NCBI GenBank assembly: GCA_950097015.1
Contig: CATNEN010000041.1
Location: 1,054,001 to 1,118,000 of the forward strand
Source of the DNA: Macrostomum hystrix
Lineage: Eukaryota; Animalia; Platyhelminthes
Reading direction: 5' to 3'
Length of the DNA stretch: 64,000 bases
Part shown: piece by piece, positions 20,852 to 51,578 of the stretch
Numbering within the stretch: position 1 is the stretch's first letter
How the letters are laid out: each line of letters starts with the position of its first letter
Made by a program: the position numbers and the translations under genes
The notes under the pieces: model-generated
Database searches by the model: none
What the model was told of the DNA's origin: nothing
What the model saw: only the letters and a program-made list of their open reading frames with translations

Positions 20852-22375
20852 TCAGACATGAGTTGATGTTGCATCAGTTTCAGTCAAGTCTCGAACCCGA
20901 GTGTCCGGCAGACTCCGAATCGGAAATGAAGCCACCAGGCAAGCGAAGCCGAGGGCTGCGAACCTGGCCGGCAGGTAGGGAATGAAGTTCACCAGCGGGG
21001 ACAGCATGCAGCCAATGCGAAGTGTGGCCATTAGGATCCCGAGCCCTGTGTTTCGCACAGCAGTCGGATAGATTTCCGCACCAACTGACATAATGGCACA
21101 AAATGATATGTTAGAAGAGAACTTTCCACCTACGGCCAGGCACACCATGAGAACTGAAATTCTCCAATTAAATTTGTCCTCAGTGACGAATATAAAGATG
21201 GCACCGATTGCGAAGCAGCAGAAGACGGTAGCGATTGCGCAAACGAACAGGGTTCGACTCCTGCTAAATAAGTTCAGTAGCAACAGTGACGGTGGCTCTA
21301 CTGCTCCCATGAGTGCAAATGTTATGTAGATGTTTGGGACTGCGTGAGTGATCACAAACGTGAACCCGTAGTATGCGAATCCACTGCTGAAACTGTACAG
21401 ACAGGTTGACAACAGATAGAACACGACCACTCGGTCTGACACCAGCTTCTTGATTGCCGCACAGAAAGATCCATCACGCACGACCCTTGACTGCAGAGCC
21501 GGTCTCGATGACCCGTGGAATTGCTGAAGCTCGTACTGTTCATCGGCTTCTTCAGGTAGCTGCATCACGTGATCTGAGCCCAGTCTGGTGACACTGTCTG
21601 GCACAGGTCGACGGTTGATCCAGGCGATGCGCTGCAGGGATCGCTTGACTTGATCCAACGATTTTGACTTCTGAGACAGCAGCCAGGACGGACTCTCGGG
21701 CAGGAAGACTGCAACCACGACTGACGGAATGGCCACAATGTTGCTGGCCATCATCAGTTGCTTGTAGTCTCGAGTGACATAGGCCAGAAGGGCCAGTAAT
21801 ATACTTCCGATCGCCGGTCCCAAGTTGTAAGATTTTACGTATCGACTGCGGTACTCCGTCATGAGCACCTCGTTGCCATAGACGAAAATCGAGCCGAGAG
21901 TCCAACTCACAAAGAAGCCGCACACCAGGCGACCAGCCAGGTGTAGCCAGAAGATCGGCGATAGCATGGCCAGTACATTCATCGAGATCGAGCCGAGCAG
22001 TCCAATCAGGACAGCTGGGATTCGACCCAGGGTGTCTGCGGCTGGACCGACCAGCAAGGAGCCGGGAATGCATCCCGCGAGCAGGAACACTGAGGACAGC
22101 TCTCCCAGAGAGGCCTGACCGTCACACAGACCGTACTCTGCACTCACTGACGTTGTGAATCCGTGCCTGCTGCTGCTGTTGGTGCTGATGTTGAGCAGCA
22201 CAGCTTCCACGAATGTTTTGTTGTTATTGCTGCTGCAGGTGAGCAGGTTGTGGAAGGCCCCCCCTGCGATGATGAATCCAGCGAAGCCGCAGGTGACGGA
22301 GCCAGCGATGCACACCAGCAGCTGGTAGGCTCCAAAGCCGCCAATCTCTTCATAAATGGCTTGCAGGTTGGGCAT
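20852..22375 (-). CDS. SLC22-family (MFS) organic cation/anion transporter-like, intronless CDS; likely start MPNLQAIYEEIGGFGAYQ at 22375 (the ORF extends to 22501)
   Basis: About 12 TM helices; SLC22-type N-terminus (IYEEIGGFGAYQ); MFS motif GPAADTLGR; E(V)L...R loop; PESPSWL; AEIYPTAVRNTGLG; C-terminal LPDT. Confidence 0.88.
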   Translation of the reverse strand: MPNLQAIYEEIGGFGAYQLLVCIAGSVTCGFAGFIIAGGAFHNLLTCSSNNNKTFVEAVLLNISTNSSSRHGFTTSVSAEYGLCDGQASLGELSSVFLLAGCIPGSLLVGPAADTLGRIPAVLIGLLGSISMNVLAMLSPIFWLHLAGRLVCGFFVSWTLGSIFVYGNEVLMTEYRSRYVKSYNLGPAIGSILLALLAYVTRDYKQLMMASNIVAIPSVVVAVFLPESPSWLLSQKSKSLDQVKRSLQRIAWINRRPVPDSVTRLGSDHVMQLPEEADEQYELQQFHGSSRPALQSRVVRDGSFCAAIKKLVSDRVVVFYLLSTCLYSFSSGFAYYGFTFVITHAVPNIYITFALMGAVEPPSLLLLNLFSRSRTLFVCAIATVFCCFAIGAIFIFVTEDKFNWRISVLMVCLAVGGKFSSNISFCAIMSVGAEIYPTAVRNTGLGILMATLRIGCMLSPLVNFIPYLPARFAALGFACLVASFPIRSLPDTRVRDLTETDATSTHV

Positions 22376-22968
22376 TTTCACTGTTTGGTCGGAAGCTCCT
22401 GAACTCTGATAAATTCCTTTGCGCTGTGTATATTGTAGCCATGCATGGGCCAGATCTGGCGCTGCTGGGTGCATGGACCGCAGCTTGGACTTGACTTTCA
22501 TTGGCCTGTCTCTGTCCTAATTTTGCTTTCAGCCTGTAACATTTCTTGTCACCGATGCAGCTGCAATGCCAGCGCTACCAATAGATGACAATGCAGTCAA
22601 CAGAAGCTGCTTGCACATACGCACTTGCACACACTGCCAGGTGTTGCCACTTGTAAAATGTGCCATCCACATGTGTAGCGCTCTGTGGTTTCATTATTAA
22701 TGTTGCCGCTGATGCCACCAGATACTGCATGACCTATACTGCAGACAGGCATGCGCCAAAATTGAAAGAATAAAATTTGTCATGCATGCATATAAAATGA
22801 CACGACTGTTTAAACTCAAAATTTAGAAACTCAAATTCGTTTTTAAATCCCAAAAATTTCGGGCCTATGGCAGATTTTTTATTCCCGGCTATAGAATACA
22901 AAAACGCCTCTTAACTACTTACAGTAGCTCGTAAACTAAAATGGTTGTCACAGGAGATCAGTTTTCTC

Positions 22969-28845: not shown

Positions 28846-30858
28846 TTATATTTCCGCAGTGGGTTCCTCTGTCATCAGGTGTGTCATTAAATCAGCTGCC
28901 AGCCGACCAACGCTCGGACAGGCCACGCCGCGGCCGGCCAGCTTGTCCAGCGCCATGCCGGACAGGTCGCACACGTGCCAATTCTCGCTGGCCGTGCTGT
29001 CCTCCAGGCCGACCTTGATGAGCAGCTGGCGCAGGCGGCTGTCCCGCCGGCCGGCCTCCAGCCAGAACCTCACGGGTCGTACCGGCAGGCAGGTGAGCAG
29101 GCGGCCGAGCAGCCGGCGCAGGGTGGCCGCGTTAAGCAGGGCGCAGCCGCGCGCCGGGCAGCTGGGCCGCACGGCCTCCAGGTCAGCCTGCGAAAGGTTT
29201 GAGGTTTGAATTCAGCTTTTCAAAATCTCAGCATTAAAAGTGGTAGAAATCTCAGTTAAAAAATATGCAGCCTCACCTGAGCAACGGGTCCGTCCCACAT
29301 GCAGTAGGTGAGCGCCACGGTGCCCTGCAGGCGGCAGTCGCAGGCCGAGCAGGTCAGGGCGAACCGGCGGCCGGCTTCGACTCCGCCGGCCAGGCGGCTG
29401 TCGCAGTCGCGCAGCTCCAGGCGGAGGCCTGCGGGCAGCGGGCGGCGCCCGGCCTGCAGGGTGGAGGACACGGTCCTGGGGAACCACAGCTCGAAGAAGC
29501 CGATGTTCTCAGTCTCAGTCAGGAACTCGAATCCCAGGCGCCTGTAGCAGTTCACGGCCGGCTGGTTGGTCCGCTGGACCAGCAGCTTCACGTGGCCGAA
29601 ATTCGAGGCCTGCGCCAACTTGGCCAGCGTGGCTAGCAGAGACTGACCCACCTGGCGACGACGTTTGGGTAAGTTTGGTTCAGTTTGGGTCAGCCTGAGT
29701 CAGTTTGGGTCAGTCTGAGTCATTTGAGTCAGGTTGGATCAGTTTGGGTCAGTCTGGGTCAGTTTAGGTCAGGTTGAATCAGTTTGGATCAGTCTGGGTC
29801 AGTTTGGGTCAGTTTGGGTCAGGTTGGATCACTTTGGGTCAGCCTGAGTCAGTCTAGGTCAGTCTGAGTCAGTTTTGGTCAGGTTGGATCAGTTTGGATC
29901 AGTCTGGGTCAGGTTGGATCACTTTGGGTCAGCCTGAGTCAGTCTAGGTCAGTCTGAGTCAGTTTTGGTCAGGTTGGATCAGTTAGTTTCAGTCTGGGTC
30001 AGTTTGGGTCAGGTTGGATCAGTTTGGATCAGTCTGGGTCAGTTTGGGTCAGTCTGGGTCAGTTTGGGTCAGTCTGGGTCAGTTTGGGTCAGGCCGGTTG
30101 GGTGGGTCCGGCCAGTTGGGTAGGTCAGGCTGTTTGGGTGGGTCAGACTGGTTGGGTGGGTCAGTCTGGTTGGGTGGGTCAGGCTGGTTGGGTGGGTCAG
30201 GCTGGTTGGGTGGGTCAGGCTAGTTGGGTGGGACAGGCTGGTTGGGTGGGTCAGGCTAGTTGGGTGGGTCAGGCTGGTTCGGTCAGGCTGGTTGGGTGGG
30301 TCAGGCTGGTCGGGCGGATCACTCTCATGTTGGGTGGGTCAAGCTGGTTGGGTGGGTCAGGCTGGTCGGGCGGATCACTCTCATGTTGGGTGGGTCAGGC
30401 TGGTTGGGTGGGTCAGGCGGGTCGGTTGGGTCAGGCAGGGTCAGATGAGTCCTTACCTGATGCCTGCGGTACAGAGGCTCCACGTAGAGGCTCTGCACGT
30501 AGAATCCGGGCTGCGAGTGGCGCAGCAGGTAGGACGGCGTGTACAGCAGGTAGCCGACCACGCGGCCGTCGGCCTCGGCAACCATGATGCGGAACAGGCC
30601 GTCGATGAGCATGAGCCGGTGTGCCTCGCTGCCCAGGCGGCAGTACTGCAGCATGCCATCGTGACACCTAGCCAGCTCCTTCTCGTGGCAGGTCACCTGC
30701 AAAGAGCAGAAACCATTTTAAATGCGAATTTCAAAAGCGAATTCGAGCCTGTGACTTCATGAACAAAAAATTCGGGTTTTTACCTGGAACATGTCAGCCG
30801 GCTTTCCGTAGCGAATCACAACCGGAACGAAAGCGGCAGCGGAGGTGTCAAAACTCAT
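28846..30858 (-). CDS. GNAT-A: tandem SSAT-like acetyltransferase, about 343 aa; exons 30858-30784, 30696-30457, 29651-29277, 29187-28846
   Basis: All introns are GT-AG phase 0. Domain 1 has VIRYGKPAD, VVGYLLY, GFYVQSLYVEPLYRRHQ|VGQSLL and NQPAVNCYRRLGFEFLTETE. Domain 2 has LTYCMWDG and ENWHVCDL. Confidence 0.85.
29670..30443. repeat. Compound minisatellite in GNAT-A intron 2 (10-bp TCAGTTTGGG units, then 17-bp GGTGGGTCAGGCTGGTT units)
   Basis: Periodicity visible directly in the sequence. Confidence 0.93.
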
Positions 30859-30928
30859 GGCGGCGGCGGGCAGCGGCTGCTGAAATTCGGCATGTCAGGA
30901 AATGAAAGACAACAAAAGCAATAGAATC

Positions 30929-31134
30929 CTGCTGATCCCAATCACCTGTGAATCCCACTGATCCCAATCACCTGTCAATCTCACTGATCCCAATCACCTG
31001 TGAATCCCACTGATCCCAATCACCTGTCAATCCCACTGATCCCAATCACCTGTGAATCCCACTGATCCCAATCACCTGTCAATCCCACTGATCCCAATCA
31101 CCTGTGAATCCCACTGATCCCAATCACCTGTCAA
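30929..31134. repeat. 26-bp tandem repeat (CTGATCCCAATCACCTGTGAATCCCA), about 8 copies
   Basis: Periodicity visible directly in the sequence. Confidence 0.93.
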
Positions 31135-31619
31135 TTTAACAGAAGCATAGTTGTGCACTAGACACAGACCAAAGAAAGCAAGCCAGGAAGCCAAAAAGCT
31201 CAAGCAAAGTAGAAGTGCTTCAAAATATAAAAAAGCTGGCTCACAGCAGATGCGCAGCAGCGGCCTAAAACCAAAAGCAACGCCGCAAAGGTTTTGTCCT
31301 GGACGGGAAGCACGAAGAAGAAAAATGGAAATGGTCAACGCAAAAATCTGCAACAGCAGGTAAGAGCCATAATAATAAACGATACCAAATCAATAAAATT
31401 TGAAGCACCAACGATACAGATGAACTTTAATGCGTACCTAAAAACTGTACCTCGTGGACACAGACATTTCCGTCCACACAATTTTAAATTTAAATGTATT
31501 ATCTTTTATCTTGTCATACGTGGCAACACTGTCTGATTGACATTCCAAAGTACGAGTATAAGTCGAGTCACGTGAATTCAGGGTGGGTGGGCGCGCAGCC
31601 AATCAGGAAGCTCCGAAAC

Positions 31620-33611
31620 TCAGGCGGCAACCAAGAAGTGCTCGGCCAGCTGCCGGCCCGCCAGGCCACCGAAGGCGCCGCCCCGCAGCACGCAGACGAC
31701 CCAGTCGCCGTCGTGCCGACCGTCGAAGTCCTCCAGGCCGACGTGCAGCAGCATCCGGCAGAGCTCGGCCTGTCGCCGGGGCACCTCGAGCCAGATCCGC
31801 CTGGGTGACGCGGCCGCGCTGAGCGCCAGGCGGCCCAGCAGCCGCTTCAGGTTGGCGGCGGTCAGCAGCTGGCAGGGCCGGCCACAGCAGGCGGGACGAA
31901 GCAGCCGAAGCTCTACCAGCATGATGCAGCCGTCCCACATGCAGTAGGTGAGGGCCGCGGTGCCCTGCAAGCGGCAGTCGCAGGCCGAGCAGGTCAGGGC
32001 GAACCGGCGGCCGGCCTCGACCCCGCCGGCCAGGCGGCTGTCGCAGTCGCGCAGCTCCAGGCTGATGCCGGCCGGCAGGGGGCGGCGGCCGGCCTGCAGA
32101 GTCGAGTTCACGAACTTGGTCGGCCACAGCTCGAAGAAGCCAATGTTCTCAGTCTCGGTCAGGAACTCGAATCCCAGGCGCCTGTAGCAGTTCACGGCAG
32201 GCTGGTTGCTCTGCTGGACTAGCAGCTTCAGGTGGCCGAAGCCCGAGGCCAGAGATAAGCGGGCCAGGGTGGCGAGCAGCGACTGGCCGAGCTGCAGTCG
32301 GTGTTAAGGGAATTATGGGGATTATTTAAAGAACCAAGGAAATTTGACAAAGCATGAATAAGAAACGGGATCTGAAGATTAGAAAATAGAAAACCGTTCG
32401 GGAATTCCACGAAGAAAATGTAAAAATTACATGAGAAAATTGAAATGAGTCATGAGGAAATGGGACATGAGGAAATGGGACATGAGGAAGTGGGGCATGA
32501 GGAAGTGGGACATGAGGAAGTGCGACATGAGGAAGTGGGGCATGAGGAAGTGGGACATGAGGAAGTGGGACATGAGGAAGTGGGACATAAGTAAGTGGGG
32601 CATGAGGAAATGGGACATGAGGAAATGGGACATGAGGAAGTAGGGCATGAGGAAATGGGACATGAGGAAGTGGGACATGAGGAAGCGGGACATGAGGAAG
32701 TGGGACATGAGGAAGTGGGACATAAGTAAGTGGGGCATGAGGAAATGGGACATGAGGAAATGGGACATGAGGAAATGGGACATGAGGAAGTAGGGCATGA
32801 GGAAATGGGACATGAGGAAATGGGACATGAGGAAATTGGGCATGAGGAAATGGGACATGAGGAAGTGGGGCATGAGGAAGTGGGGCATGAGGAAATGGGA
32901 CATGAGGAAATGGGACATGAGGAAGTGGGGCATGAGGAAGTGGGGCATGAGGAAGTGGGACATGAGGAAGTGGGGCATGAGGAAATGGGACATGAGGAAG
33001 TGGGGCATGAGGAAGTGGGACATGAGGAAGTGGGACATGAGGAAGTGGGGCATGAGGAAGTGGGGCATGAGGAAGTGGGACATGAGGAAGTGGGACATAA
33101 GTAAGTGGGGCATGAGGAAATGGGACATGAGGAAGTGGGGCGTGAGGAAGTGGGGCATGAGGAAGTGGGGCATGAGGAAGTGGGACATGAGGAAATGGGA
33201 CATGAGGAAGTGGGACATGAGGAAATGGGACATGAGGAAGTGGGGCGTGAGGAAGTGGGGCATGAGGAAATGAGCAGTGGCCCGGGAGCGCACCCGGTGC
33301 CGCCGGTGGGTTTCGGCCACGTAGAGGCTCTGTACGTAGAGCCCTGGCTGCGCCAGCTCGGCCGCGTGCGACACAGTGTAGAGCGAGAAGCCAACAAGGC
33401 GGCCGGTTTCCATGGCAACGGCCACCAGCAGTTTGAGCAGTCCGGACTGCATCATGAGACAGTGCTCGGTGAAGCTGCAGCGGCTGTACAACTGCATGCC
33501 GTCATGACAGGCCACCAGCTTCAGCTCCAGGTCGGCTGCCTGGGCGAGGTCCGCCAGGGTGCCGGGCCGGATGAGCACGGTGGGCTCGAGTTGGGAGATA
33601 AGCGTTGTCAT
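31620..33611 (-). CDS. GNAT-B: tandem SSAT-like acetyltransferase, about 329 aa; exons 33611-33294 and 32291-31620
   Basis: LIRPGTLAD...LVGFSLY...GLYVQSLYVAETHRRHR|LGQSLLATLARLS...NQPAVNCYRRLGF...LTYCMWDG...DWVVCVL; intron CGG|GTGCGC...TGCAG|CTC at the position shared with the paralogs. Confidence 0.85.
32450..33271. repeat. 15-bp minisatellite (CATGAGGAAGTGGGA), about 55 copies, in the GNAT-B intron
   Basis: Periodicity visible directly in the sequence. Confidence 0.95.
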
Positions 33612-34669
33612 GGCATCGGGGAGATCGGATGCCGCCGAGGCTGAAACAATAAAAATTAAATGGAGTTGAAATCCAAAATTATACGCGACTTCTTGAGCAC
33701 TCAGATCCCAGAATGGAGAGGATAAAAGCCTGCTCTCAGGTGCCTCACTGAACCTGCCAAATGCACTTTTAATTTGTCCAACACCCTCGCGCGACTAGCA
33801 TGTGGGCATTGTCAGCAACTGGGAAATTATTTAATAATAAACTGTTATCCCATTGGGATAATTGCTGATGCACTCAGCTTAACTTGATCCACTGCTTGCC
33901 AGTGACATTGGAAATACGGGCTATCAGATAGTCTGAATAAATTTCCCAGTGAAAAATGATTGAGACAAACAATTTACACTGCTATAAGCTGCTGGCTGCA
34001 ATGCTAAGGCGGGTTGGCTTGATTGCGCCGATACAAAATATAACAGAACTGGTCAAATTGGGATCAGCAATGTACAGCTAGTATTGCAATCAATCGCTGA
34101 TAATTAGCTAAATAAAGTATTGTAAAATAGTAAATTAGAAACGATTTACAGACTGGACTCACAAACAGACAGCAGGATTGGTAATTCAGGTAGACTCAAA
34201 AAAACTGACTCAAGAATTGCAGAATAATGTAGAAATCAGTTGCGGCATGAATTATTGATGCGGACGGTCCAAGTCTGCACAAACAATAACAGGAGGACTG
34301 GCTTGGGATACTCAATGCTGCCCCATTCTCCCAGTCAGCTCTCGGCCCAGTGAGTTGCAAATAAAAAACAACTCCCACACTTTCACTCACTGGGCGCCGA
34401 GTGGGGATAAAAGTGCAGCACAATGGGAAGCTCCGAGAGAAAAATCTGTAAAATTTCAGGAAGACATTAGGAAAGATTGCACCAATCAGCCGTGTAGAAA
34501 AATGTTTACACTGTAAGCGAATTGCCTTGGTAAGATTAAAGCACATGGACTGCAAAAAACATTGCGGCACAAACAGCGAAGTAATGAAAAATCAGATTGA
34601 AAAAAATTGATTGCACTTTTAGATAGCTAAAATTTTAGTTTATTTTTAGCTGATCCCGGCAAGCAGAGG

Positions 34670-37020
34670 GCAGAGCGAGAAGCTAATGACCGAACTCAAA
34701 TGATCAAATGAGAGGCTAATGACCGATCTCAAATGATCAAAGGAGAGGCTAATGACCGATTTCAAATGATCAAAGGAGAGGCTAATGACCGATCTGAAAT
34801 GATCAAAGGAGAGGCTAATGACCGATCTGAAATGATCAAAGGAGAGGCTAATGACCGATCTGAAATGATCAAAGGAGAGGCTAATGACCGATCTGAAATG
34901 ATCAAAGGAGAGGCTAATGACCGATCTGAAATGATCAAAGGAGAAGCTAATGACCGATCTGAAATGATCAAGGAGAGGCTAATGACCGATCTGAAATGAT
35001 CAAAGGAGAGGCTAATGACCGATCTGAAATGATCAAAGGAGAGGCTAATGACCGATCTGAAATGATCAAAGGAGAGGCTAATGACCGATCTGAAATGATC
35101 AAAGGAGAAGCTAATGACCGATCTGAAATGATCAAGGAGAGGCTAATGACCGATCTCAAATGATCAAAGGAGAGGCTAATGACCGATCTCAAATGATCAA
35201 AGGAGAGGCTAATGACCGAACTCAAATGATCAAAGGAGAGGCTAATGACCGATCTGAAATTATCAAAGGAGAAGCTAATGACCGATCTGAAATGATCAAG
35301 GAGAGGCTAATGACCGAACTCAAATGATCAAAGGAGAGGCTAATGACCGATCTGAAATTATCAAAGGAGAAGCTAATGACCGATCTCAAATGATCAAAGG
35401 AGAGGCTAATGACCGATCTCAAATGATCAAAGGAGAGGCTAATGACCGAACTCAAATGATCAAAGGAGAGGCTAATGACCGATCTGAAATTATCAAAGGA
35501 GAAGCTAATGACCGATCTCAAATGATCAAAGGAGAGGCTAATGACCGATCTCAAATGATCAAGGGAGAGGCTAATGACCGAACTCAAATGATCAAAGGAG
35601 AGGCTAATGACCGATCTGAAATGATCAAAGGAGAAGCTAATGACCGATCTGAAATGATCAAGGAGAGGCTAATGACCGATCTCAAATAATCAAAGGAGAG
35701 GCTAATGACCGAACTCAAATGATCAAAGGAGAGGCTAAAGACCGATCTCAAATGATCAAATGAGAGGCTAATGACCGATCTCAAATGATCAAGGGAGAGG
35801 CTAATGACCGAACTCAAATGATCAAAGGAGAGGCTAATGACCGATCTGAAATGATCAAAGGAGAAGCTAATGACCGATCTGAAATGATCAAGGAGAGGCT
35901 AATGACCGATCTCAAATAATCAAAGGAGAGGCTAATGACCGAACTCAAATGATCAAAAAAGAGGCTAAAGACCGATCTCAAATGATCAAATGAGAGGCTA
36001 ATGACCGATCTCAAATGATCAAGGGAGAGGCTAATGACCGAACTCAAATGATCAAAGGAGAGGCTAATGACCGATCTGAAATGATCAAAGGAGAAGCTAA
36101 TGACCGATCTGAAATGATCAAGGAGAGGCTAATGACCGAACTCAAATGATCAAAGGAGAGGCTAATGACCGATCTGAAATTATCAAAGGAGAAGCTAATG
36201 ACCGATCTCAAATGATCAAAGGAGAGGCTAATGACCGATCTCAAATGATCAAAGGAGAGGCTAATGACCGAACTCAAATGATCAAAGGAGAGGCTAATGA
36301 CCGATCTGAAATTATCAAAGGAGAAGCTAATGACCGATCTCAAATGATCAAAGGAGAGGCTAATGACCGATCTCAAATGATCAAGGGAGAGGCTAATGAC
36401 CGAACTCAAATGATCAAAGGAGAGGCTAATGACCGATCTGAAATGATCAAAGGAGAAGCTAATGACCGATCTGAAATGATCAAGGAGAGGCTAATGACCG
36501 ATCTCAAATAATCAAAGGAGAGGCTAATGACCGAACTCAAATGATCAAAGGAGAGGCTAAAGACCGATCTCAAATGATCAAATGAGAGGCTAATGACCGA
36601 TCTCAAATGATCAAGGGAGAGGCTAATGACCGAACTCAAATGATCAAAGGAGAGGCTAATGACCGATCTGAAATGATCAAAGGAGAAGCTAATGACCGAT
36701 CTGAAATGATCAAGGAGAGGCTAATGACCGATCTCAAATAATCAAAGGAGAGGCTAATGACCGAACTCAAATGATCAAAAAAGAGGCTAAAGACCGATCT
36801 CAAATGATCAAATGAGAGGCTAATGACCGATCTCAAATGATCAAGGGAGAGGCTAATGACCGAACTCAAATGATCAAAGGAGAGGCTAATGACCGATCTG
36901 AAATGATCAAAGGAGAAGCTAATGACCGATCTGAAATGATCAAGGAGAGGCTAATGACCGATCTCAAATGATCAAAGGAGAGGCTAATGACCGATCTCAA
37001 ATGATCCAACGGGAGGCTGA
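34670..37020. repeat. 33-bp minisatellite (AAATGATCAAAGGAGAGGCTAATGACCGATCTG), about 70 copies, with 230-bp and 822-bp higher-order periods
   Basis: The diagnostic variant ATCAAAAAAGAGGCTAAAG recurs at about 35952 and 36774, and ORF-track blocks recur at +822. Confidence 0.95.
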
Positions 37021-37054
37021 TGACAGGACTCAGAAGAAGCGCAGAGGCGGCCCT

Positions 37055-38249
37055 CTAAACCGGGCCCAGCTGCAGAGCGGCGTGGCTCAGGCATTCGGCC
37101 TCGACCAAGAAGTGCTCGGCCAGCTGCCGGCCCGCCAAGCCACCGAAGGCGCCGCCCCGCAGCACGCAGACGACCCAGTCGCCGTCGTGCCGACCGTCGA
37201 AGTCCTCCAGGCCGACGTGCAGCAGCGTCCGGCAGAGCTCGGCCTGTCGCCGGGGCACCTCGAGCCAGATCCGCCTGGGTGACGCGGCCGCGCTGAGCGC
37301 CAGGCGGCCCAGCAGCCGCTTCAGGTTGGCGGCGGTCAGCAGCTGGCAGGGCCGGCCACAGCAGGCGGGACGAAGCAGCCGAAGCTCTACCAGCATGATG
37401 CAGCCGTCCCACATGCAGTAGGTGAGGGCCGCGGTGCCCTGCAAGCGGCAGTCGCAGGCCGAGCAGGTCAGGGCGAACCGGCGGCCGGCCTCGACTCCGC
37501 CGGCCAGGCGGCTGTCGCAGTCGCGCAGCTCCAGGCTGATGCCGGCCGGCAGGGGGCGGCGACCGGCCTGCAGAGTCGAGTTCACGAACTTGGTCGGCCA
37601 CAGCTCGAAGAAGCCGAGGTCCTCCGTGTCGGTCAGGAACTCGAATCCCAGGCGCCTGTAGCAGTTCACGGCAGGCTGGTTGGTCCGCTGGACCAGCAGC
37701 TTCAGGTGGCCGAAGCCCGAGGCCTGCGAAAGCTTTGCCACCGTGGCCATCAGCGACTGCCCTACCTGGGGTGAAATTTGATTCAATCGGGAAAACTTGA
37801 GACTATACTCTGGTCAACAGTCTTGCACAGGCTTATTGGAGATGCAGCAGACAGTTGAGGAGAGAGCAGACAGGTGAGGGATGGAACAGACAGGTGAGGG
37901 ATGGAACAGACAGATGAGGGATGTGAAGGTAGAAATGAAAGATTCACTGTACCCGGTGCCGCCTGTAGTCGATCTCTACGAAGAGGCTTTGCACGTAGAA
38001 GCCGGGCTCGGGCAGGTCCAGCATGTGGGACTGGGTGTACAACAGGAAGCCAGCCAGCCTGTCGAATTTCTCATCAACAGCCACCAGGAGGCGGAGCAGG
38101 CCGGCCTGCAGCATTCGCCGGTGCTCAGCGCAGTCGATTCGGCAGTAAAGCTGCATGCCGCTGTGGCTGTTGGCCAGCTCCAGCTCCTGGTTGGCCACGG
38201 ACTCGATGTCATCCGCTGTGCCGCGTCTGATTCGTATCATGGTTTCCAT
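37055..38249 (-). CDS. GNAT-C: tandem SSAT-like acetyltransferase, about 335 aa; exons 38249-37953 and 37765-37055
   Basis: IRIRRGTADD...LAGFLLY...GFYVQSLFVEIDYRRHR|VGQSLMATVAKLS...NCYRRLGF...LTYCMWDG; GT-AG phase-0 intron at the shared position. Confidence 0.85.
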
Positions 38250-38339
38250 GGCAACAGGTGGGCCCGGGTAGCGGTCAGCTGAAGTGGCGAGTTGGATTTA
38301 TATTTTGGGAATGCAAGGTTTAGCTACAATTGATCATGG

Positions 38340-38500
38340 AACCTGATTTGGGTCATTGGACCTGATTTGGGTCATTGGACCTGAGGTGGAACATGGGACC
38401 TGAGGTAGGTCATGGGACCTGAGGTGTGTCATGGGACCTGAGGTGGGTCATCGGACCTAAGGTGGGTCATGGGTCCTGAAGTGGGTCATGGGACCTGACG
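38340..38500. repeat. About 19-bp repeat (GGGACCTGAGGTGGGTCAT) upstream of GNAT-C; same family as 39565-39815
   Basis: Direct inspection. Confidence 0.85.
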
Positions 38501-39050
38501 TGAGTCTTTGCTCACCTCACGTGCGAATCCCACTGATCCCCATCAGCCGTGAATCCCACAGAACCTTAGTTGTGCACTAGACAGACCAAAGAATGCAAGT
38601 CAGGAAGCCACAAATGAGAGGTCTAGCTTAGTAGACGTGCTTTATAAGAGAATTAAGCAAGTTCACAGCAGAAGTCCAATAGCGGTACGCTGAACAGTGC
38701 TGCCCTGGACGGCAAACGTGAAGAATACAAAAGCTGCTTGAAATGGTCAAGACAAAAGTCTGCAGCAGCAGGTAAGAGGTCTAACAATGGACACTATACC
38801 AATAAAGTAAAAAGCACCAACTATACAGATGTACTTACATGTGTACCTTGAAAATGTAACTATCACAATGAAAACGGAAGAAAATCTGGTGCTAACGTAA
38901 AGCTAAGGGCGACAGTCCTGCCATAAGGACACAAATGATTTATGTCTATGCAGTTCGAGATTGAAGCGATTGTTTACCTAGCTGAATCCCAGAGTAGCAG
39001 GCGTGAATTCAGGGAGGGTGGGCGCGCAGCCAATCAGGAACCTCCGAAAC

Positions 39051-39518
39051 TCAGGCGGCAACCAAGAAGTGCTCGGCCAGCTGCCAGTCGGCCAGGTCGC
39101 TGAGGGCGCCGCCTCGCCATGCGCCCTACATAAAGTCGTGGTCGTGCCGACCGTCAAAGTCCTCCAGGCCGACGTGCAGCAGCGTCCGGCAGAGCTCGGC
39201 CTGTCGCCGGGGCACCTCGAGCCAGATCCGCCTGGGTGACGCGGCCGCGCTGAGCGCCAGGCGGCCCAGCAGCCGCTTCAGGTTGGCGGCGGTCAGCAGC
39301 TGGCAGGGCCGGCCACAGCAGGCGGGACGAAGCAGCCGAAGCTCTACCAGCATGATGCAGCCGTCCCACATGCAGTAGGTGAGGGCCGCGGTGCCCTGCA
39401 AGCGGCAGTCGCAGGCCGAGCAGGTCAGGGCGAACCGGCGGCCGGCCTCGACTCCGCCGGCCAGGCGGCTGTCGCAGTCGCGCAGCTCCAGGCTGATGCC
39501 GGCCAGCAGGGGGCGGCG
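39051..39518 (-). pseudogene. GNAT-D: 5'-truncated copy containing only domain 2, with a premature TAG
   Basis: Near-identical to GNAT-B/C from RRPLxAGISLELRDCDS to GLEDFDGRHD. An in-frame TAG lies at 39128-39126 where the paralogs read DWVVC, and the copy ends in the B-type EHFLVAA*. No domain-1 exon is present upstream. Confidence 0.8.
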
Positions 39519-39564
39519 TGCAGGGGAAATGCATTGTTTAGCTAAAATATATCACATATCCGAG

Positions 39565-39815
39565 GTGGGTCATGGGACCTGAGGTGGGTCAGAGGACCTG
39601 AGGTGGGTCATGGGACCTGAGGTGGGTCAGAGGATCTGAGGTGGGTCAGAGGACCTGAGGTGGGTCAGAGGACCTGAGGTGGGTCATCGTACCTGAGGTG
39701 GGTCATGGGACCTGAGGTGGATCATAGGACCTGAGGTGGGTCATGGGACCTGAGGTGGATCATAGGACCTGAGGTGGGTCAGAGGACCTGAGGTGGGTCA
39801 TTGGACTTGAGGTGG
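39565..39815. repeat. 19-bp minisatellite (GGTGGGTCATGGGACCTGA), about 13 copies
   Basis: Periodicity visible directly in the sequence. Confidence 0.93.
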
Positions 39816-40554
39816 GGACATAAAGTGTGTGTACTAATATACTAATACACTCACTAATCACTAATACACTTCCTGACGATCTTCCTAATTTTGAAATGGT
39901 AAATTGATAAGATAAATAAAAAATTAAATTTTCTATGCCACTATTGTTGCCAGTTAGCTTACCTTAGCTTCATCGCTTCTCTCAGGAAAGATCGTAACAC
40001 GCCCGGTTTGTCGGTCAAGATTTTCCGGTCTGGCTCTGTGGGAGGTCAACTGTTGTCTGTAAGTCTTCTCTTTAAAAGTGGGTGGCTTGGATTGTATGCG
40101 GCTCAACTTGAAATGCTGGACTTTTATTTTCTACTGTCTTACCCGATGAATCCAGTAAGCAGGCAATGACAGTGCATGACAATGTGCTACAAAAACTGCT
40201 CAGTGTAGAACAATTTTAGATGCAATATATTTTTTCGAGAAGTTTGAGACTCTATAAAGACATTTTTGAGTTCCTAAGGTCTAAGGCGTCTCGAATTGGT
40301 CTAAAGATTCCGAAAAGCGGTTTGAGTCTGTAAAGTGTCTATCATCTCAAAGGCTTCTATTGAGTCTCGAATATGGCTTAGAAGGGGCTGAAGTTTCTGT
40401 AGGGTCTGAGCAGTGTCTCAAAATGGTCTCGGCGCTTGAGTATAAAGAAATCATAAAAATAGTCTCACTGCGCCTCTGGCGTCTCAAAATATGCTGGAAA
40501 TAGGCTGAGAATAGTTTTCCCAGTACCACCCACCCCTGATTGTTCACTAGCTGA

Positions 40555-40975
40555 TAGCCTGAAAGCCCCACCCCAACACCCACCCCCAATTGTACACTAG
40601 CCGATAGCCTGAAAGCCCTGCCCTAACACCCACCCCCAATTGTACACTAGCCGATAGCCTGAAAGCCCTGCCCTAACACCCACCCCCAATTGTACACTAG
40701 CCGATAGCCTGAAAGCCCTGCCCTAACACCCACCCCCAATTGTACACTAGCCGATAGCCTGAAAGCCCTGCCCTAACACCCACCCCCAATTGTACACTAG
40801 CCGATAGCCTGAAAGCCCTGCCCTAACACCCACCCCCAATTGTACACTAGTCGATAGCCTAAAAGCCCTGCCCTAACACCCACCTCCAATTGTACACTAG
40901 TCGATAGCCTAAAAGCCCCACCCCAACACCCACCCCCAATTGTACACTAGCCGATAGCCTGAAAACCCACCCCAA
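40555..40975. repeat. 50-bp tandem repeat, about 8 copies
   Basis: GAAAGCCCTGCCCTAACACCCACCCCCAATTGTACACTAGCCGATAGCCT repeated. Confidence 0.95.
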
Positions 40976-41533
40976 ATATTCGGCTGTAGTCTCGATTGAG
41001 CAGTGTTATAAGATGATTTTGAGTATTTTTATGCCAGTGTGTTTGACATTTTGTATTCAAAAGCTGCTGAAGCGTCTTGACTCTCATAACCTTTGAAATT
41101 GCTATAATATGAGTGAATTGAGCCATGGCATAGCAACCGTTGCAGCATGATTAGCTCGTTGGTGGTTCTTTTATTGAACTTTTTATTGAACATGCTCGCC
41201 CATGCTAACAGGTGGGAATATGAAACTAATTTTATCGCTGAGTCAATGGAATATTTTAAACAGAAGGCACTAGAAAAAAAGTGCATCAAAAATTAACATT
41301 TAAACTTAAAGCTCATAATCTTTAAAGCAAAAGCATTCCCTAGAAATTAAGATAATAAATATTGCGGGCTTAGAATCGATAAGACCTAAAAACTTTTCCG
41401 TTATTACGAAATATGTATATCTATTTGAATAAACACTAGCATTAAAATCTTATTGCCCGACAGAAATCTTTCAGCGAATAAGAATAGTCGATTAGCGATA
41501 ATCAAATCTCCAAGCAAATCAGCGCAAGAGCCA

Positions 41534-42170
41534 CTCAGTCAGCCAATCAGCGTATGATCGACCCAGTCAACCAATTAGCGTATGATCGACCCAGTCAGCC
41601 AATCAGCGTATGGTCGATCCAGTCAGCCAATCAGCGTATGATCGACCCAGTCAGCCAATCAGCGTATGATCGACCCAGTCAGCCAATCAGCGTATGATCG
41701 ACCCAGTCAGCCAATCAGCGTATGGTCGATCCAGTCAGCCAATCAGCGTATGATTGACCCAGTCAGCCAATCAGCGTATGATCGACCCAGTCAGCCAATC
41801 AGCGTATGATCGACCCAGTCAGCCAATCAGCGTATGATCGACCCAGTCAGCCAATCAGCGTATGGTCGATCCAGTCAGCCAATCAGCGTATGATTGACCC
41901 AGTCAGCCAATCAGCGTATGATCGACCCAGTCAGCCAATCAGCGTATGATCGACCCAGTCAGCCAATCAGCGTATGATCGACCCAGTCAGCCAATCAGCG
42001 TATGATCGACTCAGTCAGCCAATCAGCGTATGATCGACTCAGTCAGCCAATCAGCGTATGATCGACCCAGTCAACCAATTAGCGTATGGTCGACTCAGTC
42101 AGCCAATCAGTGTATGATTGACCGAGTCAGCCAGTTAGAGTATGACCCATTCAGTCAGCAAATCAGCACA
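41534..42170. repeat. 28-bp minisatellite (CAGTCAGCCAATCAGCGTATGATCGACC), about 22 copies, nearly all carrying a CCAAT-box consensus
   Basis: Periodicity visible directly in the sequence. Confidence 0.95.
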
Positions 42171-42276
42171 TGACCGTCAGCCATGCGCAATCAGCGCTTG
42201 ACTCCCAATCAGCCGGCCAGTCAGCGAATGCCCCAGTTAACCAGCAAATCAGCGCCAGACGCAGTAAGCCAGCCAT

Positions 42277-44875
42277 TCAGACGCCAGTCCGCACTCCAAG
42301 TGCCCAGCAGTCGGTCAGGTCCGGGTGCAGCCGGCAGGCAAGCGGCAGGCTGGCCAGTTGGTCCAGTGGCTTGCCATCCAGCAGGCAGATGAGCCAGTGC
42401 TCATTGGTGGAGTTGTCCTCGAAACCGGACCGGATCAGTAGGTTGTCCAGGCCGCCGGACTTTGGGCCGCCCCGGACCGCCTCAACCCAAAGACATCTGG
42501 GCTGCTGCTGCTGCTCAGCAATAGGCGCCACAGAGTCAATTAGCCTACCAATTAAGCAGGCGAGAGAAGAGGACGAAACCGCGCCGCATTCAGAGGCCGA
42601 GTCGCAAGCAGGACGAACGGCGGACATGTCCATCTGGCGGTTTGATACCGATGAAATTTAATGGCAGACATTGATTGAAGCGTATCCAAACCGCACAGAA
42701 GGCAGCCTGTGCCATTGTGAAGGGTCTCGAACCGCACAGAGGGCGGCCTGTGCCATTGTGAAGGGTCTCGAACCACACAGAGGGCAGCCCCATTGTGAAG
42801 GGTCTCAAACCACACAGAGGGCAGCCTGTGCCAATGTGAAGGGTCTCGAACCGCACAGAGGGCAGCCTGTGCCAATGTGAAGGGTCTCAAACCGCACAGA
42901 GGGCAGCCTGTGCCAATGTGAAGGGTCTCGAACCGCACAGAGGGCGGCCTGATCCACTGGCAAAGCAGCGCTCACCTGTAGCACAGGTCCCTGCCACATG
43001 CAGTAGGTGAGGGCAGCGGCGCCCCGCAGGCGGCAGTCGCAGGCTGAGCAAGTCAGCTCGAAGCGCCTGCCGTCGCCGGCGTCACCGTCAGAAGGCCGCA
43101 GCCGCAGACTGATACCGTCTGGTAGCGGCTGCAGACCGGCGGCGGCGAATCCAGCAACGAAATCCTCGTCGATCACCTCAAAGAAGGCGACGTCCTCGGC
43201 CTCGGTCAGCACCTGGAAGCCGAGGCGCCGGTACCAGTCGACTGCGCTGTTGTCACCCTGGACAATCAGCTTGAGGTGGCCGCATCCCGTTGCCACCGCC
43301 TGACGAGCCAGCGCGATCAGCAATGATTTGCCCACCTACAATTTATTCACAATCAGTGCTTCTCTACTACTAATAGCAGTGTGATCCATGCCCACTATCA
43401 CACCTGACACCCATGCCCACTCTCACACCTGACACCCATGCCCACTATCACACCTGACACCCATGCCCACTCTCACACCTGACACCCATGCCCACTATCA
43501 CACCTGACACCCATGCCCACTATCACACCTGACACCCATGCCCACTCACACACCTGAGACCCATGCCCACTCTCACACCTGAGACCCATGCCCACTCTCT
43601 CACCTGACACCTAAGACCCATGCCCACTCACACACCTGACACCATGCCCACTCTCTCACCTGACACCTAAGACCCATGCCCACTCTCACACCTGAGACCC
43701 GTGCCCACTCTCACACCTGACACCCATGCCCACTCTCTCACCTGACACCTAAGACCCATGCCCACTCTCACACCTGAGACCCATGCACACTCTCACACCT
43801 GAGACCCATGCCCACTCACACACCTGACACCCATGCCCACTCTCTCACCTGACACCTAAGACCCATGCCCACTCTCTCACCTGACACCTAAGACCCATGC
43901 CCACTCTCACACCTGAGACCCATGCCCACTCACACACCTGACACCCATGCCCACTCTCTCACCTGACACCTAAGACCCATGCCCACTCTCACACCTGAGA
44001 CCCATGCCCACTCTCACACCTGAGACCCATGCCCACTATCACACCTGACACCCATGCCCACTCACACACCTGACACCCATGCCCACTCTCTCACCTGACA
44101 CCTAAGACCCATGCCCACTCTCACACCTGAGACCCATGCCCACTCTCACACCTGAGACCCATGCCCACTCACACACCTGACACCCATGCCCACTCTCTCA
44201 CGTGACACCTGAGACCCATGCCCACTCACACACCTGACACCCATGCCCACTCTCTCACCTGACACCTGAGACCCATGCCCACTCTCACACCTGAGACCTA
44301 TGCACACTCTCACACCTGAGACCCATGCCCACTCACACACCTGACACCCATGCCCACTCTCACACCTGAGACCCATGCACACTCTCACAGCTGACACCTG
44401 AGACCCATGCCCACTCTCACACCTGAGACCCATGCACACTCACACACCTGACACCTGAGACCCATGCCCACTCACACACCTGACACCTGAGACCCATGCC
44501 CACTCTCACACCTGACACCTGAGACCCATGCCCACTGACCTGCAGTCCGCGATGACCCTGGCAGACGTAGATGGCCTGCAGGTACAGTCCGGGCCGGTCA
44601 TGCCTGTCTGAGTGCGAAGAGGTGTACAGGGCGAAACCCGCCGGCCGGCTGCCATCTTCGAAGGCGACCTCGGCGACCAGCAGGCGGGCCAGGCCGGACT
44701 GCAGTGCCTGGCGGTGGTCCGCGGCCTGCATGCTGCAGAACTGCAGCATACCGTCGTGATTGGCGGCCATGTCGCGAACGTGATGGGCCACAAACTCGGC
44801 GTCCTCGTCTGGCCGTCCGGGTCGGATCAGCAGCGGCTCCTGCGGCGTGGAGCTTGTTGAATTTGTGGACGACAT
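42277..44875 (-). CDS. GNAT-E: most divergent tandem SSAT-like acetyltransferase, about 350 aa; exons 44875-44540, 43335-42976, 42633-42277
   Basis: LLIRPGRPDED...PAGFALY...GLYLQAIYVCQGHRGLQ|VGKSLL...DNSAVDWYRRLGF...LTYCMWQGPVLQ|MDMSAVRP...EHWLICLL; all introns are GT-AG phase 0. Confidence 0.85.
42700..42952. repeat. 41-bp tandem repeat, about 6 copies, in GNAT-E intron 2
   Basis: GAGGGCAGCCTGTGCCATTGTGAAGGGTCTCGAACCGCACA repeated. Confidence 0.9.
43388..44535. repeat. About 25-bp minisatellite (CCCATGCCCACTCTCACACCTGAGA) filling GNAT-E intron 1
   Basis: Direct periodicity; begins immediately after the donor. Confidence 0.95.
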
Positions 44876-49684: not shown

Positions 49685-50864
49685 AAGTTTCAACTTTACT
49701 TGAGCAATAAATAAAGAAATGAAAATCATTATTAATTGCTATAAACTTGAAAATTATGCAATTCCAAGTGAACACAATTAGCAAATTACAAAAGACCCAT
49801 CGGTAGAAAAGCGTACATGCTTAAACACAGGTGTACACTTATTGCTTTAAGCTCCTCGTACTTCTCATACTATAGGAGTATTCATACTCCTACAGTATGA
49901 GATGGAGCCCAACTGGAAGTGACCTATGCACAAAACCCAGGTGAATTCAACACAGACACACCGAATTCCACAAGCAATTCCGCTTGAGTTCACACGCTCA
50001 CAGTAACCCGAGACCAGCACTTCACTCTCCCTTCCTCCCGCTCTGAGGCTACGCAGCTAAAAAAATAGGACTGAAGAAAGCCGAGCCTCTAGGAGTCTCT
50101 GATTTCCTCAGCTCCGAATTGCTTGCTCTAAAAAAGCACTGGAGCCAGCCAGAGACCACCCGCAACAATGCCTGCCTACGAAGCGGAACCACCCAAACTG
50201 CAACCCGACCGCATGGCAACAGGCGGATTGGCGGCGGCGCAGCTTCCTCTCCCACTGCGTGATTCCTCAAAGCCTAGACAGAAGGGGAAAAGTAGGGGCA
50301 GCCTATGAATGGCCCAAACAGATTAGCACCGCCGGTGACGCAACCGACCGGCCGGGCCCATCTGGCGGCAGGAACTGCCAGATTATGGGGACAATGGGAA
50401 AATATAAAAAAGAAATGGGATATCCTGGGATTTAATTCCCCTAGCTGGGCCCCGGAGACAACCCCAGCCGGGAGGTTTCGAGTTTGACTTTTGTCTCCCT
50501 AATTGCTCCAGTGAAGTGGAACGGAATTAAGAATGCAAAGCTAAACACACAGTCAGCGGCCCAGCTACCTGTTTCGCAGGTGACAAAAAGCTCTAGACAA
50601 ATCTAAATCTTATTTAAAGAGAATATTAAAAGGGATTAGAAAAAAAGTGTGATTTAATCCCAAAAGAGCTTCTTATAAGAGGGTCCCAATTAGCACAAGC
50701 AAGGTGCCTCTTGATCGCTTAATAAGTTAACCAAATAGATGAGACAATAAATGGCCGTAGCGGGAAATAACAAAGGAATTTATCCGGCAGGAACCTGCTG
50801 CGATTCTAAGTGGACCTGCTATGATACAGGCCACGTTTATTTGAAATTAACTGTGGCACCTGCG

Positions 50865-51360
50865 GCGATTCTAGCGATCCAACCTGCTGCGATTCCAGCT
50901 ATATACCCTGCTGCGATTCCAGCTACATACCCTGCTGTGATTCCAGCTACATACCCTGCTGCAATTCCAGCTACATACCCTGCTGCGATTCCAGCTACAT
51001 ACCCTGCTGCGATTCCAGCTACATAACCTGCTGCGATTCCAGCTACATACCCTGCTGCGATTCCAGCTACATACCCTGCTGTGATTCCAGCTACATACCC
51101 TGCTGCGATTCCAGCTACATACCCTGCTGCGATTCCAGCTACATACCCTGCTGTGATTCCAGCTACATACCCTGCTGTGATTCCAGCTACGTACTCGTAC
51201 TCCGCTGCGATTCCAGCAATCCAACTGCTGCGATTCCTGCTACGTAGTCCGCTGCGATTCCAGCCATCTACTCCGCTGCGATTCCAGCTTCCATAACCCG
51301 CTGCGATTTCAGCAATCCACCCTACTGCGACACCAGCTACCAACTATGCTGCGATTCCAG
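50865..51360. repeat. 24-bp minisatellite (CCTGCTGCGATTCCAGCTACATAC)
   Basis: Periodicity visible directly in the sequence. Confidence 0.93.
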
Positions 51361-51484
51361 CAACTTAACTTTTTTGATTTTTTCCAATTTCAAACCAGGC
51401 CATGCTTATTTTGATTAATGAAGAAAAAACAAGTGAATTAAGTTGTCTCGACTAAACTAACAGCAGAAGACAGCAATTGAAAAG

Positions 51485-51490
51485 TTTATT
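51485..51490 (-). promoter_or_regulatory. Candidate polyadenylation signal AATAAA for the RhoGAP gene
   Basis: TTTATT on the + strand about 90 nt past the RhoGAP stop codon. Confidence 0.45.
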
Positions 51491-51578
51491 AGGGCATTTA
51501 CAAGACCAAATAGATTTCTCAATGAAAGCAAACGCAAATAAAGAGTCAGAATTCCCGACAGCCGCAGCTCGACACGAG

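Follow-up and report, generated by a model that had tools for sequence, protein, structure and literature searches.

Fused SSAT-like acetyltransferase genes in Macrostomum hystrix: a degenerate second half that may complete the active site of the first

A gene array of the flatworm Macrostomum hystrix raises the question of why an acetyltransferase-like protein should carry a second acetyltransferase-like half from which the catalytic motifs have disappeared. The window analysed here, i.e., the whole stretch under study, comprises 64,000 nucleotides (contig CATNEN010000041.1 of GenBank assembly GCA_950097015.1, positions 1,054,001 to 1,118,000 of the forward strand). Four intact genes (A, B, C, and E) are located on its minus strand at positions 28846-44875 and encode proteins of 329-350 amino acids; these lengths and the outer coordinates, as proposed in the initial annotation, agree with gene models based on GT-AG introns. 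Each polypeptide contains two domains of the GNAT fold, of which only the first (half 1) keeps the acyl-CoA and catalytic motifs. It appears, with a probability of roughly 0.62, that each protein is a single-chain, SSAT-type double-GNAT in which half 1 is the only active site and the second domain (half 2) completes half 1. The genes constitute a Macrostomum-specific family of four to five expressed members, whose products are probable small-amine acetyltransferases.

The two halves belong to one gene. All introns of genes A, B, C, and E are canonical (GT..AG) and of phase 0, and the boundary between the halves lies inside a single exon in genes B and C. This boundary is crossed by RNA contigs assembled from three public runs. 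The contigs leave out precisely the 187 nt of the gene C intron (37766-37952), with zero cover inside it, and at their 5' end they extend by 23-24 letters whose reverse complement corresponds to bases 12-34 of the 35-nt spliced leader published for Macrostomum lignano. It follows that gene C is transcribed, that its cis-splicing agrees with the model, and that it is trans-spliced to the leader at 38280-38279; the leader's own ATG is out of frame with the gene C ATG at 38249. A second RNA contig, which appears as a loose end at 37724, carries the gene B version of exon 2. In M. lignano (GCA_002269645.1), the same four genes are found in the same order (E-C-B-A), and a RhoGAP gene flanks the array on the same side in both species. 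The closest protein matches for the window are M. lignano proteins (62-83% identity), and the exons of gene A are 82-89% identical to the M. lignano locus. Across eight proteins from the two species, 82 residues are invariant (39 in half 1 and 43 in half 2); since the order of the four genes is also kept, the array cannot be ascribed to chance. The ratios of nonsynonymous to synonymous substitution rates (dN/dS, Nei-Gojobori) calculated against the M. lignano orthologues are 0.26 for half 1 and 0.31 for half 2, with a range of 0.17-0.38 over the four genes. In view of this ratio, and of its share of the invariant residues (43 of 82), half 2 is maintained by purifying selection rather than decaying. 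One might suspect an annotation artefact, in which the halves are separate adjacent genes or half 2 is a decaying remnant, because half 2 has no Pfam match and because some gene models in M. lignano are chimeric (P0004, P0006). However, this explanation is already contradicted by the exon that spans the boundary in genes B and C, by the RNA contigs that cross it, by the dN/dS of half 2, and by the synteny and protein length kept in two species, and its probability is negligible.

Half 1 is an SSAT-like GNAT. Analyses of the window used individual exons, and full-length searches and folding were carried out with the M. lignano orthologue P0001, which is approx. 78% identical to gene C, as a proxy. 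With separate exons, Pfam returned only weak GNAT matches, which fell in half 1. When P0001 was compared with solved structures (phmmer against the PDB), the matches were confined to residues 9-160, and the best of them belonged to the SSAT group, i.e., plant NATA1/GNAT8 (1e-10), thialysine acetyltransferase (4e-8), and SAT1 (5e-6). In the structural comparison (VIA), residues 6-170 of the P0001 model aligned with C. elegans thialysine acetyltransferase over 160 residues, with Z 18.2 and a root-mean-square deviation (rmsd) of 1.6 Å; for the thialysine enzyme, SAT1, SAT2, and NATA1 together, Z was 16-18.2 and rmsd 1.6-2.2 Å. Superposition on SAT1, SAT2, and the thialysine N-acetyltransferase extends over approx. 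140-160 residues and includes the swapped arm; thus, for human and mouse SSAT (Z 16-18), model residues 9-170 align with residues 4-170 of the chain. With respect to sequence, half 1 retains a variant of motif A (RRH(R/Q)(V/L)GQSL, or HRGLQVGKSL in gene E) and motif B (N..AV.(C/W)YRRLGF). In all eight proteins, Y139, the counterpart of SAT1 Tyr140, is invariant, as are N132, A135, R141, G143, R100, G105, and the β-bulge region. The loop between β3 and β4, which carries Trp84 in SSAT, is devoid of Trp, and the position of Trp154 is occupied by Gly or Phe; in the proteins of genes A-C, a Trp is found five residues downstream of the latter position (ELWP).

Half 2 has retained the complementary set of elements. 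It keeps LTYCMW(D/Q)G and a C-terminal Trp strand (ENWHV, GDWVV, or EHWLI), and in the eight proteins it is without a P-loop and has Leu in place of the catalytic Tyr. Two of its residues, W222 and W300, are invariant and align in register with the Trp84 and Trp154 positions, respectively. The internal duplication is invisible in pairwise comparison, because a BLASTP search of half 1 against half 2 returned nothing (E 28), and the half-2 exons gave no Pfam match. It is, however, detected when profiles are compared: in hhalign, the half-2 profile was aligned with a profile of 35 SSAT-like domains with a probability of 74% (E 2.9e-5, 98 columns) and in register, so that LTYCMWDG falls on the Y-S-T-W-x-G loop and DWVVC.L.G..L..LA on W-x-x-C-R-L-x-G-x-x-L-x-x-LA. 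In a multiple alignment with tandem relatives, half 2 is short by approx. 45 residues, which correspond to helices α1-α2. When half 2 was folded alone, from a family-only alignment that contained no GNAT sequences that could bias the result, nearly all Foldseek/VIA matches were of the GNAT fold, with Z up to 8.4. On the whole, the initial annotation described both halves well: the translations bear out its account of what each keeps (the motif A variant and motif B in half 1, LTYCMW(D/Q)G and the C-terminal Trp in half 2) and of what each lacks (the two Trp residues in half 1, motif A and the Tyr in half 2). The complementary losses that it proposed are seen in that the Tyr, motif B, and the P-loop variant occur in half 1 only, while W222 and W300 occur in half 2 only. 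Its assignment of both halves to the SSAT type is upheld by the searches and superpositions of half 1 and, for half 2, by the in-register profile alignment and the GNAT order of strands and helices (without α1-α2) in the model. The exception is the N-terminal motif of half 1, which was given as IRPxTxxD and is in fact only (I/L)R.G...D, with R12, G14, and D18 invariant.

The meaning of this pattern becomes apparent when it is compared with SAT1, in which the spermine site lies at the interface of subunits A and B (preprint describing PDB 2B58). According to the same preprint, Glu28, Tyr78, Tyr90, and the Glu92/Asp93 pair come from subunit A, and Asp82, Trp84, and Trp154 from subunit B; the residue numbering was checked against the SAT1 alignment. 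Human and mouse SSAT dimers also exchange their last strands, as described in the literature. Thus, the trans action of the Trp-bearing loop and the C-terminal arm, as stated in the initial annotation, agrees with the origin of these three residues in the other subunit. The flatworm proteins share the catalytic Tyr and motif B with SAT1, SAT2, and the thialysine enzyme, and their half 2 keeps the counterparts of Trp84 and Trp154. They differ from these homodimers in that there is one chain with one potential active site, in that half 2 lacks α1-α2, and in four replacements: Gln and Ser/Ala stand for Glu92 and Asp93, Cys stands for Asp82 of the partner subunit, and the first Gly of the P-loop is substituted.

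The full-length AlphaFold model of P0001 (mean predicted local distance difference test score, pLDDT, of 87; predicted template modelling score, pTM, of 0.87) shows the two halves with their strands and helices in identical order, except for the missing α1-α2 of half 2, and places strand W300-R306 of half 2 in the sheet of half 1. For SSAT chains, the aligned range of the model is 9-170, with 157-162 residues aligned. In contrast, GNATs without a swapped strand (Ta0374, PaiA, Ard1, RimI, and NAA60) align from residue 8 to approx. 308 over approx. 146-160 residues; the half-2 strand 300-306 would therefore fill the place of their last strand. It is well supported by the predicted model that the fused chain packs like the strand-swapped SSAT dimer, which is also the outcome that the initial annotation expected of such modelling.

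It is reasonable to propose that each gene gives rise to one chain that constitutes a fused, strand-swapped SSAT pseudo-dimer. Half 1 (approx. residues 1-170) would be a complete SSAT-like GNAT, in which the P-loop variant, motif B, and the Tyr general acid are kept for acetyl-CoA binding and catalysis, and it would most likely be the sole active site. Half 2 (approx. residues 171-320) would be a GNAT stripped of α1-α2, the P-loop, and the Tyr, and purifying selection might keep it because it completes half 1. Its last strand, with the invariant W300..C303, would insert into the half-1 sheet and thus do the job of the partner's Trp154 in SAT1, and its β3-β4 loop, with the invariant Y-C-M-W-x-G, would line the acceptor pocket and do the job of the partner's Trp84. 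The reciprocal site would be dead. With regard to the substrate, the Gln in place of Glu92, the Ser/Ala in place of Asp93, and the Cys in place of the partner's Asp82 suggest, at the level of sequence, that the acceptor is probably a less basic small amine rather than a long polyamine.

Several observations weigh against this arrangement. The counterpart of the general base of SSAT, Glu92, is an invariant Gln (Q91) in eight of eight proteins, and a Glu92-to-Gln substitution in mouse SSAT confirmed the essential role of Glu92 (review). The P-loop deviates from the acetyl-CoA consensus Q/R-x-x-G-x-G/A: it reads R-R-H-(R/Q)-(V/L)-G, or R-G-L-(Q/K)-V-G in the E lineage, so that its first Gly is Arg, Gln, or Lys in all eight proteins. 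In intact relatives, Gly almost always occupies this position, and the R-x-x-R-x-G form is found elsewhere in a degenerate half. The replacements at the general base and in the P-loop had both escaped the initial annotation. As for the packing, it was deduced from the residue ranges over which the model aligns with known chains rather than by superposing it directly on the SAT1 dimer, and tandem GNAT proteins were present in the alignment behind the full-length model, so that half 2 may be biased towards the GNAT fold. Modelled alone, half 2 is of low confidence (pLDDT 64), and its matches have Z of 8.4 or less. The replaced general base and P-loop Gly, the essential role of Glu92 in the mouse enzyme, and the existence of a transcript that contains half 2 only would be in line with a pseudoenzyme, in which neither half transfers acetyl and the protein, with its fused fold preserved, serves to bind ligands or other proteins. 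However, it would then be difficult to justify the invariance of Tyr139, of motif B (N132, A135, R141, and G143), of R100 and G105, and of the β-bulge region, as well as the dN/dS of 0.26 for half 1. Furthermore, a dedicated general base is dispensable in many GNATs, which act without one. A pseudoenzyme is therefore unlikely, though it deserves to be kept in mind. Catalysis by half 1, which the sequence makes likely, is not assured given the Gln at the Glu92 position and the replaced P-loop Gly, and this applies above all to polyamine specificity. Accordingly, the earlier proposal of a single-chain heterodimer with one active site holds for the packing, as seen in the predicted model, while its catalytic part is less secure.

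Half 2 also has features of its own. Its conserved cysteine cluster (P0001 residues 204-243 and 303) comprises C-x-x-C-D-C, Y-C-M-W, C243, and W-x-x-C303; C207-D-C209, C220, C243, and C303 are invariant, as is a GRRF motif, and the cluster could possibly form a metal site or disulfides. These cysteines and the GRRF motif, together with the homogenisation of half 2 between genes B and C while exon 1 diverges, might indicate a regulatory, allosteric, or partner-binding domain that takes no part in the active site of half 1. Such a role seems improbable, more so than a pseudoenzyme, given that the invariant Trp residues of half 2 stand exactly at the two trans positions of SSAT and that the model puts strand 300-306 in the half-1 sheet. 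A half 2 that completes half 1 thus remains the preferred explanation.

The two parts of the proteins appear to follow different evolutionary paths. Between genes B and C, identity rises along the coding sequence from 53% (amino acids) and 66% (nucleotides) in exon 1, through 85% and 90% in the half-1 part of exon 2, to 99.4% and 99.2% in half 2 (31623-32093 vs. 37058-37567). The half-2 coding sequences of genes B, C, and D (39130-39492 in D) are approx. 99% identical at the nucleotide level. The M. lignano paralogues P0001 and P0002 exhibit the same pattern, with a homogenised half 2 and a diverged N-terminal part. Because half 2 is nearly identical where exon 1 is only 66% identical, and likewise in P0001/P0002, these sequence comparisons point to gene conversion that homogenises half 2 between paralogues, with the N-terminal part of half 1 left to diverge. 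Gene D adds a fifth member to the four genes of the initial annotation; it was recognised from a fragment (39518-39054) that begins at the boundary between the halves and holds an internal stop. In RNA contigs, a mini-exon consisting of ATG and 8 nt, followed by a GTAAG donor, is joined in frame to a second exon that duplicates part of the 3' end of gene B. The resulting open reading frame (ORF) encodes half 2 only and terminates at a premature stop just before the Trp strand. No counterpart of gene D was seen in the M. lignano locus. It might be a pseudogene transcript or a functional truncated partner.

How widespread is such an architecture? An exhaustive search yielded 536 relatives; among the best 150, approx. 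40 are proteins of 285-400 amino acids with two SSAT-like domains, e.g., from cyanobacteria, Acidobacteriota, a liverwort, and a mite. The high rank of these tandem proteins is due solely to matches of both domains to half 1, and no relatives matching both halves were found by this search outside Macrostomum. A word-based protein search gave matches in M. lignano only, and when a half-2 hidden Markov model was compared with 157 relatives, only the C-terminal W..C.L.G..L..LA motif was matched outside Macrostomum. In NCBIfam, neither the flatworm proteins nor the bacterial tandem proteins scored above the cut-off of any family, and no publication on these Macrostomum genes came up in literature searches. 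With regard to taxonomic range, the sequence searches recovered the full architecture in Macrostomum only, but SSAT-like tandem fusions as such recur in bacteria, a liverwort, and a mite. In a domain tree, constructed in a quick version, the halves of many tandem proteins are each other's closest relatives, and fusion therefore arose many times. In the same tree, half 1 of the flatworm proteins branches as a separate clade amid unnamed metagenomic proteins with a single domain, whereas half 2 is unplaced (branch length 2.4). The tree showed neither shared ancestry of the flatworm family with other tandems nor a donor lineage, and with half 2 unplaced no claim of horizontal transfer is made.

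Among the other tandems, a cyanobacterial clade is the most instructive, as it has old and distinct half-1 and half-2 lineages and the same polarity of loss as the flatworm family. Its half 1 is intact except for the C-terminal Trp; YSTFLT and DWRIC are retained in its half 2, where the P-loop, the Glu-Asp pair, and the Tyr are decayed in seven members (P0017, P0018, P0023, P0043, P0051, P0075, and P0076). Bacterial tandem SSAT-like GNATs, such as the cyanobacterial HEY9645391.1 and MEM9448715.1 and an ESM Atlas cluster, resemble the flatworm proteins in length and two-domain shape; for the 327-residue bacterial proteins of the ESM Atlas cluster, the template modelling (TM) scores are 0.76/0.78 over 292 residues. 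However, their second domain keeps α1-α2, and none has been characterised. Fused duplicates of the SSAT type are also present in animals: one in the mite Brevipalpus (XP_074604070.1), another in the Logan protein P0031, a tandem of SAT2-like units whose second half matches human SAT2 with E 3e-34. Unlike in the flatworm proteins, both halves are intact and are each other's closest relative, so these duplications are recent and independent.

The claim of the initial annotation that the architecture was undescribed is overstated, not only because SSAT-like tandems are common in databases but also because double-GNATs with one active domain have been characterised. They include NMT, MshD, Eis, VipF, the clavulanate tandem GNAT, and HisAT/NAT16. 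The second domain of HisAT contributes a Trp to substrate binding, and MshD and the clavulanic-acid protein (2WPX) are monomeric tandem GNATs whose inactive domain forms part of the substrate site. With HisAT/NAT16 and NMT, the flatworm proteins have in common two GNAT domains per chain, swapped strands, and an N-terminal domain that binds (in the flatworm, is predicted to bind) acyl-CoA. Nonetheless, global superposition on these proteins is poor (TM 0.32-0.44, rmsd 8-16 Å), the second domain is truncated, and the flatworm family is of other origin, i.e., from an SSAT-like dimer. TM to MshD and 2WPX is only approx. 0.45, and for solved double-GNATs in general (2WPX, HisAT 9EMP, MAB_4324, GlmA, VipF, and NMT) it is 0.32-0.46, with rmsd of 7-16 Å; there is no double-GNAT chain among the top 50 by Z in the VIA comparison of the full-length model. 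By analogy, the family would work like the double-GNATs with one active domain, yet it would derive from an SSAT-type dimer. What is new here is an SSAT-derived double-GNAT with a truncated second domain; a double-GNAT with one active domain was already known.

The coordinates of the genes and of the two halves of gene C are given in Table 1; gene E is the most divergent paralogue of the array. Minisatellites with units of 10-57 bp and a length of up to 2.3 kb fill introns and spacers of the array (29663-30436, 32451-33269, 43386-44519, and 34677-37024) and thus account for long spurious ORFs in a plain ORF list, such as the 394-amino-acid ORF at 32427-33611. Among the M. lignano database models P0004, P0005, P0006, P0008, and P0009, several are chimeric or frame-shifted read-throughs of adjacent paralogues. 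Neighbouring features in the window comprise a single-exon MFS/sugar-transporter-like ORF of 549 amino acids (20852-22501, minus strand), a rhodopsin-type G protein-coupled receptor (5369-6361, minus strand), and Yae1-like and RhoGAP exons (50837-53351, minus strand).

Table 1. Genes of the array and domains of gene C, with positions counted from the first nucleotide of the window.
Feature	Coordinates	Strand	Description	Basis
Gene A	28846..30858	-	343 aa, 4 exons: 30858-30784, 30696-30457, 29651-29277, 29187-28846	GT-AG phase-0 model; orthologue M. lignano P0003
Gene B	31620..33611	-	329 aa, 2 exons: 33611-33294, 32291-31620; intron is a 15-bp minisatellite	GT-AG phase-0 model
Gene C	37055..38280	-	335 aa, 2 exons: 38249-37953, 37765-37055; spliced-leader acceptor AG 38280-38279	RNA contigs
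Gene C half 1 (SSAT-like GNAT)	37568..38249	-	P-loop variant split by intron; Gln for general-base Glu; motif B with catalytic Tyr
Gene C half 2 (degenerate GNAT)	37058..37567	-	CxxCDC, LTYCMWDG, GDWVVC strand
Gene D	39126..39973	-	Half-2-only paralogue; mini-exon 39973-39963 and exon 39492-39126; ORF of 125 aa	RNA contigs
Gene E	42277..44875	-	350 aa, 3 exons: 44875-44540, 43335-42976, 42633-42277	GT-AG phase-0 model; orthologue M. lignano P0007

Taken more broadly, these comparisons suggest, tentatively and at somewhat less than even odds, that SSAT-like dimers have repeatedly been fused and that at least two independent decays of the same polarity followed, one in the cyanobacterial clade and one in Macrostomum, giving a distinct SSAT-type class of double-GNATs without a solved or characterised member. 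Within this context, the flatworm half 2 might be an interchangeable module that is homogenised by conversion and transcribed alone in gene D, while the N-terminal, specificity-determining part of half 1 diversifies. The family does not change the general understanding of how double-GNAT enzymes work, and a solved structure would add a new arrangement to this class. It would be a natural example of an obligate homodimer with shared active sites that was fused and then reduced to one site, and the similar outcome in unrelated lineages might make it useful for testing subfunctionalisation within fused dimers as well as the half-of-sites behaviour of SSAT enzymes. As regards flatworm biology, the family stands out by an acceptor pocket that appears to be altered and less acidic.

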